A stretch of 32,000 nucleotides of DNA from Wallemia ichthyophaga EXF-994. Its lineage: Eukaryota; Fungi; Basidiomycota. The stretch lies in the NCBI RefSeq assembly GCF_000400465.1, contig NW_008806275.1:369656-401655 (forward strand), in the 5' to 3' direction. This document shows positions 4,621-30,964 of this stretch, piece after piece. The translations under genes and the position numbers were made by a program. Position 1 is the first letter of the stretch, and each line of letters starts with the position of its first letter. The notes beneath the pieces were generated by a model. The model saw nothing but the letters and a program-made list of their open reading frames with translations. It made no database searches and was not told the origin of the DNA.

Positions 4621-6938
4621 CTACTCCTGATATATTATTATTTCATTGCTATCAACATTTGGATCGATTGCTTGTTGAACAGCATCAATAATGTCTAACT
4701 GATGATCATCAATATCTCGCATTCTTTCCTCGATCATTTCTCCAACATCAATGCAAGATTCGTATTCGTGATTGTGATGTCCGTTATCGTCATTGACAGC
4801 ATCAACTTCAGATATAGTACCAATAGAACTATTTCTTCTGCTTGAGGGTATACTTTGCAAACTCATCCATCGTTTTACGGGCGCAAATGATCTAGTTGGA
4901 GTACTTGGAGGTGTCTTTATAGTTTGAAATGGCGACATGTTTTTTCGATTTTTAAGATTTTTGGGTAGATATTTCAGTGTACTGTTCATGTTTGTAGAGA
5001 AATGTCTCTCCAAGGATGTAAATAGTCTAGGTCGATAAAAATGCTGCCAATAGTCATGAGACAAATGAGCTTCAGCTTTGCTTTTACCCTGATACTCCAA
5101 ATCTTTTGTCTCTTTAATATTATTGTCTTGGTCAATTTTAAAAAATTCTGCTGATGGCAAAGGAATCGAGGTTAGAGAATCAAATGAAACTGAAGATGAA
5201 GTTTGTCCAAGAAATAAATCTATGGCTGCTTGCTTATCAGCGTCTAATAAAGAATTTGCGTAGTATCTCTTAATATTTTCAACGAGATCACGTGAGTGAC
5301 TGTGTATATTAGAAAGATACTAATTTAAGAGATCAACCTCACCTATTCCATTGATTAATTTTGCGATAAGTTTCCACTCGATTAACGAGCGCACTTCCGC
5401 CATACTGAAGAGCAATCGCTAAAACATTTTAACAACATTAGCAAAGTTCACGAGAAGAGGAGGCTTGAAAAGACTTACTATCACCATGATCATGGTACAT
5501 TTCAGTAAGCATATTGACAGCATCAGTATCATGTACAAGAGCAGGCTTCTCAATAATACCGAGAGCGTGCAATTGATGAGTGAAAGCCACCTTTCCAATG
5601 ACAAATTGTGCAGCATTCGTACGATCCAAACAGTCAACACAATTTGTTCTAGTTATGCCACATTGCCGCTGATCGTTTTTGGAATGATAAAACCCCGTAC
5701 TCTGAATGGAATCAATGGCAAAATTTTCCAAGAATCCTATGACATCTTGATTAGATTTAGATGCTCTTGACATGTCCCACGAGGTCATTTTGATTTTGTT
5801 ATCTTGACTTAAAAATTGATTAAGGTGTTGAATACACTCATTATAGCTATGAAGTAATTTTGATTCCCTTGGCACGCGTTCGCGACACTTTACCAAATTT
5901 AAAACAAAGGTTGGAGAGCCGTAACGTTGGAAGAGATTCTTAAAATGAATAGCAGCGTTACGATAGTAAGGATCAACAGGTGCAACTAAGGAAATTTAGT
6001 GTGGTAAGAGACAATTAAACATGAAGAAACTCACTGTTAATCATAGGCTTCAGCCCCATTTGAGGATCCTGACTCCAAAATAAAGGTACAGAACCTCTAT
6101 ATTGTAAGAATGAAGTAAAATTAGGATTAATTTTGTGATCCAAATTCTGTGAAGTGAAGGGTGTAGTTAAGGTATCAGAGACGATTTGTTCAGATTCGAC
6201 TTCATTAGCTACGTGTCCAAATTCATTTGAACCTCTTTTTAGGTATCTGGCACCGGCATAATGACGAGATCTTCTAGCGATCAAAGTGACGTAGATGACA
6301 CGACCGAAGACAATTAATTTAGATTGATCAACAAAGCCATGAATGATTGGTAGAATCCAAGAAGACTTTGGTAAATGATTTGGATTCAAGATGGGAGTGA
6401 GTAGATGATGATTCCAAATGAAGCGATCGTTGAAATGAAAGAAATTGAAAGGAAGATTGGAAGTCAAGTTAGATTGCAAAGAGCATGTCAAGTCGTAAGA
6501 GTAACTAAAGTAAAAGTTCTTACTTAAGTCGACTTGTTTGAACGTATTGAGCAATTTAGACTCAAGTTTACCTCCCAAAAACGACTTTTTTGGGGAAAAG
6601 TTAATCAATAGAGTATCGTCAACGTGATAAATGTAATGACCACCTAATAAGCAAACAGGGGATCTTCTAGTGATGAGAATGAGATAAGGGAACTTCGTGA
6701 ACTTGATAAAACCAAGAACGCCGTAAAAGTTGATAACCTTATTCAATCCACCAGATTCTAATTCAATCAATTTCAAGAGCTGATTAACATCTTTAAAAGT
6801 ATAAACGTTGTCATCATCTTCAATTTGGATTTCGATAGATTTATGTATTTTAATGACTTTATAAAAATCAAGAGATTGATTAGTACCAATAATGATGAAG
6901 CTTGATTTGATTTCATATAAAGTGAACTTGTCCAGCAT
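4621..6938 (-). CDS. FIG4: SAC-domain PI(3,5)P2 5-phosphatase
   Basis: SAC1-homology domain (FYFSYSYDLT, RRSRHYAGARYLKRG, RGSVPLFWSQ), catalytic CX5R RTNCVDCLDRTN, and FIG4-type LQYGGSALVN and DADKQAAIDLFLG after three GT-AG introns. Confidence 0.95.
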
Positions 6939-16707: not shown

Positions 16708-19700
16708 ATGCGGTCACTCCGAGAATCTTTCTCATCTGCAACCACCATGTTCGCAAACAAACCAAGTGAAACTTTGTCATCAACGGAGAAATCTGACCAA
16801 AGTGGGCGATGAGTAGACTGGATGATACGTGGCTAACATTTCTAAAGCACCAGCTCATGTCAGAGACTCATCCGATATCCTCCATGAACACAACGTCGAT
16901 CCCCTGCTCGGGCTTTCTTTCGGTAGGGTCGATCAGCTGCAGAAGGAATTCGGACCCAACAGATTAAAACCCCCGCCCAAACCATCTTTGCTGAAGATAT
17001 TCGGTACTCAGATCGGAAATGCTGTAAGTTGCACGCTCGCCTTGCCTCTTAATCTCATATGTCGTCATTGTAGATGACACTCGTTCTGATAGCTGCAATG
17101 GCTGTCTCCTTTGGTACACAAGACTGGATTGAAGCAGGCGTCATTGCTGCTCTCGTTATCCTCAACGTCACTGTCGGATTTACCCAGGAGTGGAAGGCTG
17201 AAAAGACTGTTGCTGCCCTCGAAAGTGTGGGTAAATAATACATGCTAATAACTTGTCTAACTCATAAAACAGGTAGGAAGTCCTACCGCTGTTGTCGTAC
17301 GGCACGATGCTTCAAACAAAGGTCATGAAGGAAAAATTATCGATGTTCAAACCGACGAAGTTGTTCCAGGCGATATTATGATGGTTAAAATTGGAGATGT
17401 TATTCCTGCTGATGGAAGAGTTATTGCCAATCACATATCCAACCTCGAAGTAGACGAAGCCTTATTGACTGGTGAATCTCTACCCGTCGCTAAGCAAACT
17501 GAAACACTCGATGACAAAACATGCCCTGTTGGTGATCGTCTTAACATGGTTTTCTCCGGTAGTCAGGTGACAAAAGGTAGAGCTAGATGCGTAGTCACTT
17601 CAATTGGAATGAATACTGAGCTTGGTTCTATATCTGAAGCTTTGGCAACAAAAGCTGATTCTAAAAAGCGCGGTTGGAGAAGATTTTGGGAGAAAACGCA
17701 GGTTTTCTTAGGTGTAAAGGGTACAACCCCACTTCAAATAAAATTGAACAAGTTGGCCTACTTGCTTCTTGCATTAGCAATCATATTTGCCATCGTCGTC
17801 GTCAGCTCAACTGGATACGTTGACATTCCAGATTCCACGGCAACTTATGCAGTTGCTACTGCTATTTCTGTTTTGCCTGCTTCGCTCATTGCTGTAGTTT
17901 CGCTAACACTTGCAACATCTTCAAGAGAGTTAGCTAAGAGGAACGCATTAGTTCGTAAGATGGATGCAATCGAAACGTTGGCAGGTGTAACAGATATCTG
18001 TTCAGACAAGACTGGTACTATCACTGTCGGAAGAATGGTTTTAAAGAAGGCTTGGGTGCCTTCACGTTCTGAATCAACGGACACCAAAGTCGGACAAATC
18101 TATGCCGTTGAATCGGGTAAAGATCCTTACTATCCAAGAGGCACAATACAAGCACAAGATAACAACGCCGACGACAATGAGAGTGACGTATCAGATAGCG
18201 ACGTCGTTCATGTAAATGAATTGGATTCTTCATTTCAGGAACTCGTTCAGTCGGCTGCACTCAACAATATGGCAACAATATCAGCTGGTGATGAAGGAGG
18301 CGAATGGGACGCCAAAGGGGATCCAACAGAGATTGCCTTACAAGTGTTCTCTCATAAGGCTGGTCATGGTAAACCTCATTTGACACATCAACCTAAGCAT
18401 AGAGCAAAGAAGGAAGATCATCCTGCGCCTAGGGCTGATGTAAAGGGTCACTTTGAGATGTTAATCGAACATCCCTTCGATTCATCTATCAAAAGAATGA
18501 CTACTGCATGGAAATTCGTTGATGCTCAGAATGCCGACGATTCCAAGCAACATGTCTTCATTTATATGAAAGGTGCAGTCGAGAGGGTGCTAGAAAGATG
18601 TACACATGTTTCAATAGGTGATAAATCAATTGAGATGACAGAAGATGCCAAAGATGACATCATAAAAAAGATGGACCAGTTGGCAGCTGAAGGATTGCGT
18701 GTTTTGGCTCTTGCTGGTAGAACGGACCGTCTTTCCAATGCTCAGACTGTGAAGGAAACTAAGAGAGACGATGTAGAAAAAGGGTTTGGTCTGTTAGGCT
18801 TAGTTGGTATATTTGATCCGCCAAGACCTGAGTCTAAAGGGGCTGTCTACGATTCAAGGCGAGCATCGATAGTCGTAAGAATGCTTACGGGTGACCATGC
18901 AGCAACAGCCGCATCGATCGCGATGTCAGTGGGCATCCTAGATAAGAATCACTCCAAATCTGCTGTAATGACTGGCCAACAATTCGATGCAATGACTGAT
19001 GAAGAGGTAGATGCACTTGAAGAGCTCCCCGTGGTGGTAGCGAGATGTGCTCCTGAAACTAAGACTGGATTCGTTGATGCCTTACATCGTCGAAAACGTT
19101 TAACTGTTATGACTGGCGACGGTGTGAACGATTCACCTGCCCTTAAGAGAGCCGATGTTGGAGTTGCAATGGGACTCAATGGCTCAGATGTTGCAAAGGG
19201 TGCTGCCGATATCGTTCTGGCAGACGACAACTTCTCTACTTGTGTTCGTGCAGTCAGAAAGGGTAGATCGGTTTTTACAAACTTATCAAAATTTTTAGTC
19301 TACTTACTTGCTGGTAACGTTGCGGAGGTCTTGGTGTTGCTTATCGGGTTGGCTATTCGTTCTGACGGCAATGCTGTCTATCCTATCTCACCAGTTGGTG
19401 CACTGTAAGTAGTAAACTTGATGCGTGGATTGTCTGACAAACCGCGAAGCGTAATAAACACTCTTACAATCGGTCCAGTAGCTTTCGCGCTCGGTATCGA
19501 ACCAACAGCAGACGACACGATGCTTCAACCACCTAGCAACTTCTTCACTATATTCACACCTACATGGTTCCTGGATCTATCCTCTTATGGATTTGTTTCG
19601 GGTGCACTCTGTTTTGCTAATTACATCATCGTCATCTATGCAAGAAACGACGGTAATGAAGATGTCTCTGCCAATTGCAATGAGGGTGCTGTCAACAGTG

Positions 19701-30017: not shown

Positions 30018-30183
30018 TCATATGTAGCTTATTCATATAGAATACAAGGAATACCTCCATCTAAACTTTCAGTTAAGCCAGTTTACATCAGAGCATTACA
30101 AACGACAAATTCTGGTATGAAGTACAGCGAGCAGCCAACCAAACCTCCGCAAAACGCAAAAGGAATGACGGCCAACAAGCAAC

Positions 30184-30300
30184 TAATGTCCAAAATGCCA
30201 TTTGCAGCTATATCTGAGAATGGATAATAACTTTGGTGTCATCGTCTTGTTTAGAGGGAGGTATGACATTTCCAAAACAAAAGACAATAACTCAAACAAG
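30184..30300 (-). ncRNA. candidate box H/ACA snoRNA targeting 18S U1414/U1415
   Basis: Hairpin (TGTTTGAG/CTCTAAACA), H box AGACGA 30247-30242, second hairpin (CCAAAG/TTTTGG), ACA 30189-30187 plus 3 nt. Pocket TTATTGTCTT and ACCTCC pair with 18S GAGGCAAUAA and GGA(A/G)GU, 15 nt from the H box. Upper stem is weak. Confidence 0.5.
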
Positions 30301-30376
30301 GTACTGGCTTTAGTTAATGACTGTATAGATTGTTAGATGGTTGTATATCCAAGTAGAAGTGCGAATAGCGTAAACG

Positions 30377-30465
30377 TTGTCAGCGTTAGAAAGTGTCTTT
30401 TGGTAAATAGTTATCTTCAGCGAGTTTACAGAAGCAGAACTGTTATTTACTTGATCATCATCGAA
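30377..30465 (-). ncRNA. snR61: box C/D snoRNA, snR61/SNORD38-like (25S Am1133, yeast numbering)
   Basis: Box C ATGATGA 30461-30455; guide CAGTTCTGCTT (30442-30432) antisense to 25S AAGCAGAACUG, followed by D'-like CTGT; box D CTGA 30383-30380; ~14-bp external stem GTGCGAATGGGCGTA/TACGCTATTCGCAC. Confidence 0.85.
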
Positions 30466-30579
30466 TACGCCCATTCGCACCTCAACAGCAATTTACTTAC
30501 AAATTGGCTTTCCCAATTATTGAGTTCATTCAAATCTGCATGGCCAGGTCAGCGACTTCAAAATGCGTTAAGTCCGCAG

Positions 30580-30670
30580 TATGTTCAGTTGGTGGTGCAT
30601 ATGCGTTGGTACATTTATTCTTTCACCCGCGATTAGCAGCCCGTAATGGGTGGGCGTTTCATCATCGATC
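30580..30670 (-). ncRNA. snR55: box C/D snoRNA, snR55/SNORD33-like (18S Um1269, yeast numbering)
   Basis: Box C ATGATGA 30665-30659, box D CTGA 30588-30585; guide ATGCACCACCA is antisense to 18S UGGUGGUGCAU and the D+5 rule hits U1269; extra CCACCCAT is antisense to the adjacent AUGGGUGG; flanking CAGTA/TACTG stem. Confidence 0.85.
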
Positions 30671-30964
30671 TTTACTGAGGACTTGAGAGCACTCACCCAA
30701 TGTATACAAACGGCCAGGATGGATATATCATTCATAGCCTCATTTGACTCTGAAAGATTTATCCGCTCCTCACCGTAGCGAATAAAAGATTGCTCGAGCG
30801 AACAGCAAAATTTATAGGCGCAAAAAAAATCAGATTATATAAAGTCACACGCGTTTTAAGTACTGTTTGTAATCTAGCATCTGAGTATGCTTCTCTGAAT
30901 CTCACATGTAACATTTCACTCACTTTGCGCGTCAATTATCGTGTTTGCTATCATCTTACAAAAC

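Follow-up and report, generated by a model that had tools for sequence, protein, structure and literature searches.

A probable non-coding host gene for snR55-type, snR61-type and CD53-like box C/D snoRNAs between the CobW-domain and TCD1 genes of Wallemia

Cluster II of the fungal snoRNAs (snR57-snR55-snR61) was found in nearly all fungi examined (PMC3596301). In the Basidiomycota, the Euascomycetes and Rhizopus all snoRNAs of the cluster are intronic and the exons of the host lack coding potential, and in the Euascomycetes the snR57 intron has been lost from the cluster (PMC3596301). In the clusters of Neurospora crassa splicing was shown by RT-PCR, and one exon-encoded snoRNA was reported (PMC2780460). 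The same work provided experimental detection of CD53, an orphan RNA located on chromosome IV with CD34 (snR55) and CD38 (snR61) (PMC2780460). The CD_53 family has been listed only "loosely" in the Pezizomycotina (PMC5824354). Exons of a single nucleotide between snoRNA introns are known from spliced clusters in Candida (PMC5033589), and snR61 was shown to use extra base-pairing beside its target (PMC3116282).

The locus described here was identified in a 32 kb stretch of DNA (hereafter: the window). A CobW-domain gene on the minus strand (stop codon 30967-30965) and the TCD1/ThiF gene on the plus strand (stop codon 30015-30017) converge here; 950 bases lie between their stop codons, and the minus strand of this gap carries two introns with strong splice signals. 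We consider it very probable that the gap is occupied by a minus-strand non-coding snoRNA host gene, which represents the Wallemia form of fungal cluster II. The predicted features, in the order of transcription, are the following:

30808..30851, minus strand: candidate promoter block of the host (CGTGTGAC...T8...TATAAAT), of putative function
30816-30810, minus strand: TATA box within the candidate promoter block
30697..30790, minus strand: host exon 1; the 5' coordinate is a guess, the 3' edge is the donor of intron 1
30536..30696, minus strand: intron 1, 161 nt (donor GTGAGT, branch site GCTGAC at 30553-30548, acceptor CAG)
30570..30684, minus strand: external stem of the first snoRNA (arms 30684-30674 and 30580-30570)
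30583..30669, minus strand: snR55/U33-type box C/D snoRNA, in intron 1
30501..30535, minus strand: host exon 2, 35 nt, non-coding, not conserved
30321..30500, minus strand: intron 2, 180 nt (donor GTAAGT, CTAAC at about 30336, acceptor CAG)
30356..30483, minus strand: external stem of the second snoRNA (arms 30483-30467 and 30371-30356)
30378..30466, minus strand: snR61/U38-type box C/D snoRNA, in intron 2 (Rfam RF00476, 55.8 bits)
30054..30320, minus strand: last exon of the host, which holds the third snoRNA; the 3' coordinate is provisional
30054..30261, minus strand: third box C/D snoRNA, CD53-like, about 185 nt, in the last exon

In its main properties the locus agrees with the UHG/gas5-like hosts described for cluster II (PMC3596301, PMC2780460, PMC5033589). 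It shares with them the succession of snR55 and snR61, each in an intron of its own, the same guides and rRNA targets, and short, poorly conserved exons that are free of ORFs, the internal one of which can shrink to 1 nt. The snR55-type RNA lies directly upstream of the snR61-type RNA, each in an intron with canonical signals, in all three Wallemia-like genomes compared, and the snR57 intron is lacking, as in the Euascomycetes. Wallemia differs from the described clusters in that a CD53-like RNA follows snR61, in the unusually long external stems (11-19 bp) of all its snoRNAs, and in the position of the host, which is confined to a narrow gap between two protein-coding neighbours, the genome being very compact. 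The locus is thus an additional, ordinary case of a type of host gene that has already been published for fungi, including the Basidiomycota.

Related loci were found via the flanking proteins. The comparison covers the window and two Wallemia-like contigs, denoted L001, in which TCD1 is 94% identical and the C-terminus of the CobW protein 73% identical, and L002, which is more distant (TCD1 76% identical). Four other contigs, L003-L006, are 99.2% identical to the window. The order CobW - RNAs - TCD1 is unchanged in L001-L004, the contigs that are long enough to judge; around a TCD1 relative of 62% identity the locus was not syntenic. Elsewhere in the window, a large exon (17378-19405, plus strand) codes for a P-type sodium ATPase of the ENA type. 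It shares 94% identity with a protein of Wallemia ichthyophaga, the next named matches being those of other Basidiomycota with at most 63% identity, which places the window in a Wallemia species. Wallemia is a basidiomycete genus that tolerates salt and dryness.

In the three-way alignment both intronic snoRNAs stand out as near-invariant islands, whereas the exons and the intron spacers can hardly be aligned. Between the window and a near-identical contig 8 differences were counted in 971 bases, none of them in the mature parts of these two snoRNAs. All three RNAs have a box C near the 5' end and a box D near the 3' end, joined by a terminal stem, and in the flanking stems the pairing is kept despite sequence change.

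The earlier note on this DNA had proposed two minus-strand introns of 161 and 180 nt, each with an ATGATGA...CTGA arrangement and a flanking inverted repeat, and had remarked on their length relative to other introns. Both introns are present, the boxes were found in each (30665-30659 and 30588-30585 in intron 1; 30461-30455 and 30383-30380 in intron 2), and inverted repeats surround both RNAs. The length contrast also holds: other introns in the window measure 41, 44 and 47 nt (junctions 29282/29324 and 29455/29500 in TCD1, 19888/19936 in the ENA ATPase gene), so that the snoRNA introns have about four times the normal length. These lengths were taken from protein-to-genome alignment, which was used instead of a regular-expression intron scan that yielded mostly false positives above 100 nt.

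The lengths of the two introns vary between 161 and 184 nt in the three genomes. Intron 1 measures 170 nt in L001 and 173 nt in L002, with donor, CTGAC branch site and acceptor kept; intron 2 measures 184 and 172 nt, respectively, with donor, CTAAC branch site and acceptor kept. The internal exon has 35 nt in the window, 37 nt in L001 and a single nucleotide in L002. The latter (about 6372-6380, minus strand) resembles the 1-nt exons of the Candida snoRNA clusters.

These signals bear on the possibility that genuine snoRNAs arise here, as they do in S. cerevisiae, by cleavage of a polycistronic precursor that is not spliced, with the splice-site look-alikes remaining unused. In Wallemia the third RNA lacks an intron, and the long terminal stems on all three RNAs could support a processing that is free of splicing. 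Nevertheless, donor, CTRAC and acceptor hold corresponding positions in three genomes, with unalignable sequence in between, and the L002 introns abut with a 1-nt exon, as in the spliced Candida clusters (PMC5033589). An unspliced precursor therefore appears very improbable, and the intronic arrangement is the reading followed below.

Exon 1 of the host has no conserved ORF and is poorly conserved apart from ATTGG|GTGAGT at the donor, and no sense ORF of at least 25 residues is common to the window, L001 and L002. The window does contain ORFs, namely an antisense ORF of 99 residues (30337-30636, plus strand) and sense ORFs of 55-56 residues, and in contigs that are near-identical or related to it automatic callers also place short ORFs at this locus. 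One could imagine that the locus encodes a small protein and that the snoRNA-like features are accidental. However, both L001 and L002 lack all of these ORFs, conservation tracks the RNA boxes, guides and stems rather than codons, and an Rfam match exceeds its gathering score, which leaves a small protein with a practically negligible probability. The ORFs called over the snoRNAs (54-63 residues; 30310-30480 on the minus strand of the window, 7544-7708 in L003, 6496-6687 in L002) are artefacts, because none is conserved between the genomes. The 99-residue ORF had been suspected in the earlier note to be a miscall, in line with its absence from L001 and L002. With ORFs that are not shared, and exons that diverge while snoRNAs and splice signals stay, the host looks non-coding; the proposal of a non-coding snoRNA host gene made in that note gains support from the same pattern.

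The candidate promoter block begins 114 nt 3' of the CobW stop codon. In L001 42 of its 44 bases are the same, with diverged flanks; in L002 the block was not recognisable in the three-way comparison. With this TATA block, kept in two of the three genomes, the host may have a promoter of its own. The alternative is that the snoRNA introns belong to a long 3' UTR of the upstream CobW gene, the snoRNAs being released from CobW transcripts or from read-through. The CobW stop codon is indeed on the same strand, and only some 270 nt separate it from the first donor downstream. In L002 this distance is about 195 nt with no clear conserved promoter block, and Wallemia genomes are very compact. On the other hand, the TATA-bearing block between stop codon and first donor is kept in the window and L001 despite its diverged surroundings, a CobW mRNA with introns in its 3' UTR would be prone to nonsense-mediated decay, and the cluster II hosts that have been studied in fungi are separate non-coding genes (PMC3596301, PMC2780460). 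Taken together, we regard an origin from the CobW transcript as unlikely and prefer a separate host gene. A donor-like GTGAGT further upstream, at 30923, was dropped as it is not conserved in L001.

Within the promoter block, at 30843-30850, the plus-strand reading AGTCACAC resembles the Homol-D box of fission yeast (CAGTCACA), which serves snoRNA and ribosomal-protein promoters. The Homol-D-like 8-mer occurs three times in the window, against 0.9 occurrences expected, and was not seen in L002.

The first snoRNA has its box C (ATGATGA) at 30665-30659, a guide, UAUGCACCACCA, at 30601-30590, and its box D (CTGA) at 30588-30585. The 12 nt of the guide, located before box D, pair with positions 1266-1277 of yeast 18S rRNA in 11 Watson-Crick pairs and one G-U pair, with U1269 facing the fifth base ahead of box D; this uridine corresponds to human U1326. 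Guide targets were placed on the rRNA sequences of S. cerevisiae, which had the expected lengths (1800 and 3396 nt) and the known sites Um1269 and Am1133 at the expected positions. The guides of the first and the second RNA would presuppose UGGUGGUGCAU and AAGCAGAACUG in the rRNA of Wallemia.

In its function the first RNA would correspond to yeast snR55, human SNORD33 (U33) and N. crassa CD34 (RF00472, RF00133; clan CL00054): its box D guide is predicted to select the same U1269, and it likewise lies directly upstream of snR61. Outside boxes and guide the Wallemia RNA is unrelated to these homologs, resembling neither yeast snR55 nor the snR55-like RNAs of unrelated contigs. The match to the Rfam snR55 family (RF00472), which in the window covers the full length of the RNA, scored 17.2 bits there, 24.7 bits in L001 and 22.5 bits in L002, all below the gathering score of 50 that defines membership of snosnR55/SNORD33. 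Within Wallemia the RNA is well preserved, with about 70 of 81 positions invariant in three genomes. A model (R1) was built from 12 snR55-like RNAs that adjoin snR61 in unrelated fungal contigs; in the window, L001 and L002 its top match coincided exactly with the guide plus box D of the first snoRNA (E 0.003-0.005, to be read as rough values). The similarity to R1 is confined to this functional element, as is usual for RNAs of this class. The first RNA is therefore called snR55/U33-type by function and position and not a member of the Rfam family, an assignment supported by guide, boxes and gene order.

The inverted repeat around the first RNA (AAGTCCTCAGT / ACTGCGGACTT) forms a stem in both the minimum-energy and the centroid fold. 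Its arms differ in sequence between the genomes with complementarity kept, and the stem reaches 13 bp in L001 and 19 bp in L002. The 5' half of the RNA contains a GC-rich element, CGCCCACCCAUUACGGGCUGCUAAUCGCGGGUG (30625-30657, minus strand), which is invariant in three genomes. The snR55-like RNAs of the unrelated contigs lack it. It has no rRNA complement longer than 10 nt and may represent an internal hairpin or an extra guide.

The second snoRNA is readily assigned. Its box C (ATGATGA, 30461-30455) is followed by the D' guide CAGUUCUGCUU (30442-30432), by CUGU as box D', by the C' motif UGAAGA within 30420-30410, and by box D (CTGA) at 30383-30380. The guide forms 11 Watson-Crick pairs with positions 1129-1139 of yeast 25S rRNA, placing A1133 at D'+5. 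The accessory element UUUACCAAAAG (30407-30397) pairs with 25S positions 1121-1131, which adjoin the target. Against the gathering score of 45, the Rfam family RF00476 matched with 55.8 bits in the window, 55.9 bits in L001 and 47.7 bits in L002, and the RNA thus belongs to this family in all three genomes; no other Rfam family attains its gathering score anywhere in the 32 kb. The Rfam alignment of the window puts box D on CUAA, but the real box D is the CUGA found 6 nt further, as L001 and L002 show. The arrangement of box C, guide and box D is beyond chance, since no matches to this pattern are expected from shuffles of the window.

Both guides had been named in the earlier note, and both were recovered: that of snR55 with 12 pairs to yeast 18S rRNA and U1269 at D+5, that of snR61 with 11 pairs to 25S rRNA and A1133 at D'+5. 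The Rfam matches it anticipated were obtained for snR61 (55.8 versus 45 bits; the family score is passed in three genomes) but failed for snR55 (17.2 versus 50 bits). The adjacency of the two RNAs, which it gave for the yeast cluster, is found across fungi in the published survey, as are the non-coding intronic hosts that it mentioned (PMC3596301).

With S. cerevisiae snR61, human SNORD38 and N. crassa CD38 the second RNA has in common the D' guide CAGUUCUGCUU for 25S Am1133, the C' motif UGAAGA and the accessory element UACCAAAA beside the target. It differs from them in the sequence of box D', which is CUGU instead of CUGA, in the presence of GACACUUUCUA before box D, and in the box C of L002, which reads GGGAUGA. 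The element GACACUUUCUA (30387-30397, minus strand), the 11 nt before box D, is invariant in three genomes and lies outside the Rfam snR61 consensus; possibly it is a second guide specific to this lineage. The flanking inverted repeat GAGGTGCGAATGGGCGT / ACGCTATTCGCACTTC has a duplex energy of -28.2 kcal/mol and is present as a stem in the minimum-energy and centroid folds, with a z-score of -2.2 for the intron. The sequences of its arms change in L001 and L002, with complementarity retained.

A third box C/D RNA, overlooked in the earlier note, is found just downstream, in the same place in all of L001-L006 (11425-11630 in L001; about 5955-6150 in L002). It is about 90% identical in L001 and invariant at its two ends in L002. 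The RNA is closed by a terminal stem of 13 bp (30261-30249 / 30066-30054) that covaries, from CCUCCCUCUAAAC / GUUUAGAUGGAGG in the window to GCCUUUUUUC / GAAUAAGGC in L002. Box C, at 30245, reads ACGAUGA in the window and has the canonical form AUGAUGA in L002. It is followed by an invariant single-stranded stretch (30238-30217), a D'-like CAGA, a long variable hairpin and the C' motif UGAUGU, after which come AAACUGGCUU and box D (AAACUGGCUUAA plus box D: 30084-30069). A stop codon and a 1-nt indel in L001 show that this region is not coding.

No Rfam family matched the third RNA, even when it was searched alone, and on this ground snR57, U14, snR4/snR45 (U13-like), snR190 and U3 were rejected as identities. 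By eye, the third RNA also lacks complementarity to the domain A and B sites of U14 on 18S rRNA and to helices 34 and 45, and the layout published for snR4/snR45 is a different one (PMC5464676).

The closest described relative is CD53 of N. crassa, the sequence of which (EU780977) was taken from the supplement of PMC2780460. The two RNAs fall in the same length class and share the succession of box C, a conserved single-stranded stretch with AUCCAU, a long variable helix, a C' motif (UGAGUU/UGAUGU), UAAAC(U/C)GGCU and box D. Their common motifs are UGAUGACA(A/C)C..AGU..AUCCAU and UGAGUUAAA(C/A)(U/C)GGCUU..CUGA. Both are located downstream of snR61 and both have no evident rRNA target. In contrast to CD53, the Wallemia RNA has no intron of its own, carries the 13-bp terminal stem and has an unrelated central helix.

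The link between CD53 and the snR55-snR61 pair extends beyond N. crassa. A metagenome scan for the snR61 guide plus accessory element yielded 32 contigs (L011-L042), in 26 of which a snR55-type guide (U1269 at position 5, then CUGA) is found 183-222 nt upstream of the snR61 guide. A CD53-like RNA follows snR61 in 13 of the 32, about 375-520 nt downstream, and these 13 relatives of the third RNA are closely matched by N. crassa CD53. Among the ascomycete-like CD53 members the helix between D' and C' covaries, as judged by inspection of the sequences. It seems that a three-member cluster snR55-snR61-CD53 is widespread. With an HMM made from the non-Wallemia members, the two best matches in each Wallemia locus were the two ends of the third RNA (nhmmer E 0.4-9, a weak similarity if taken alone); a 22-mer from the third RNA gave zero matches in a metagenome scan of its own. 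Considering motifs, layout and position together, homology of the third RNA to CD53 is probable.

At eight distinct non-Wallemia loci the CD53-like RNA resides in an intron of its own, in which the donor precedes box C by 39-54 nt and the branch site follows box D at a distance of 50-64 nt. Between the acceptor of intron 2 and the third snoRNA no donor-like site was present in the three Wallemia-like loci, which is why the RNA is placed in the last exon. In Wallemia the place of this intron thus appears to be taken by a long terminal stem.

Complementarity of the third RNA to yeast 18S, 25S and 5.8S rRNA is limited to matches of 8 nt and a single match of 11 nt (18S 251-261), which is not placed for methylation, and no guide of at least 10 nt next to box D or D' that sets a known modified nucleotide opposite position 5 was recognised. 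Since the conserved single-stranded stretches fit no methylation site, CD53-type RNAs possibly do not guide methylation at all. Box C/D RNAs with another role exist: snR4 and snR45 guide acetylation. We tentatively suggest, as a speculation that may well prove wrong, that the CD53 family predates the split of Basidiomycota and Ascomycota, has been tied to snR55-snR61, and acts as a folding chaperone or as a guide for another enzyme, the intron having been swapped for a stem in Wallemia.

From the known biogenesis of intronic box C/D snoRNAs the following course may be proposed. RNA polymerase II would start downstream of the TATA box at about 30816, and the two long introns would be spliced out, leaving the spliced exons as by-products without a function of their own. 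Snu13, Nop56, Nop58 and Nop1/fibrillarin would assemble on the box C/D kink-turn while the intron is made or debranched, the long external stem would hold the kink-turn together, and exonucleases would trim the released introns back to the particle. For the box D guide of the first RNA, the predicted target of 2'-O-methylation is the uridine of the small subunit that corresponds to yeast U1269. By means of its D' guide and the accessory element UACCAAAA, the second RNA would direct methylation of the large-subunit adenosine equivalent to yeast A1133. The third RNA is probably released from the same transcript, with its 13-bp terminal stem in place of an intron.

To the biology of fungal snoRNA clusters the locus adds little. 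For the annotation of the Wallemia genome it would add a missed non-coding gene with three snoRNAs, and the short ORFs called there are spurious. Of interest to specialists are, in this very compact genome with its introns of 45 nt, the long flanking stems on all three snoRNAs and the loss of one intron, and also the linkage of a CD53-type RNA to snR55-snR61 in distant fungi. If the early origin suggested above for CD53 were true, this family would be much older and wider than reported.
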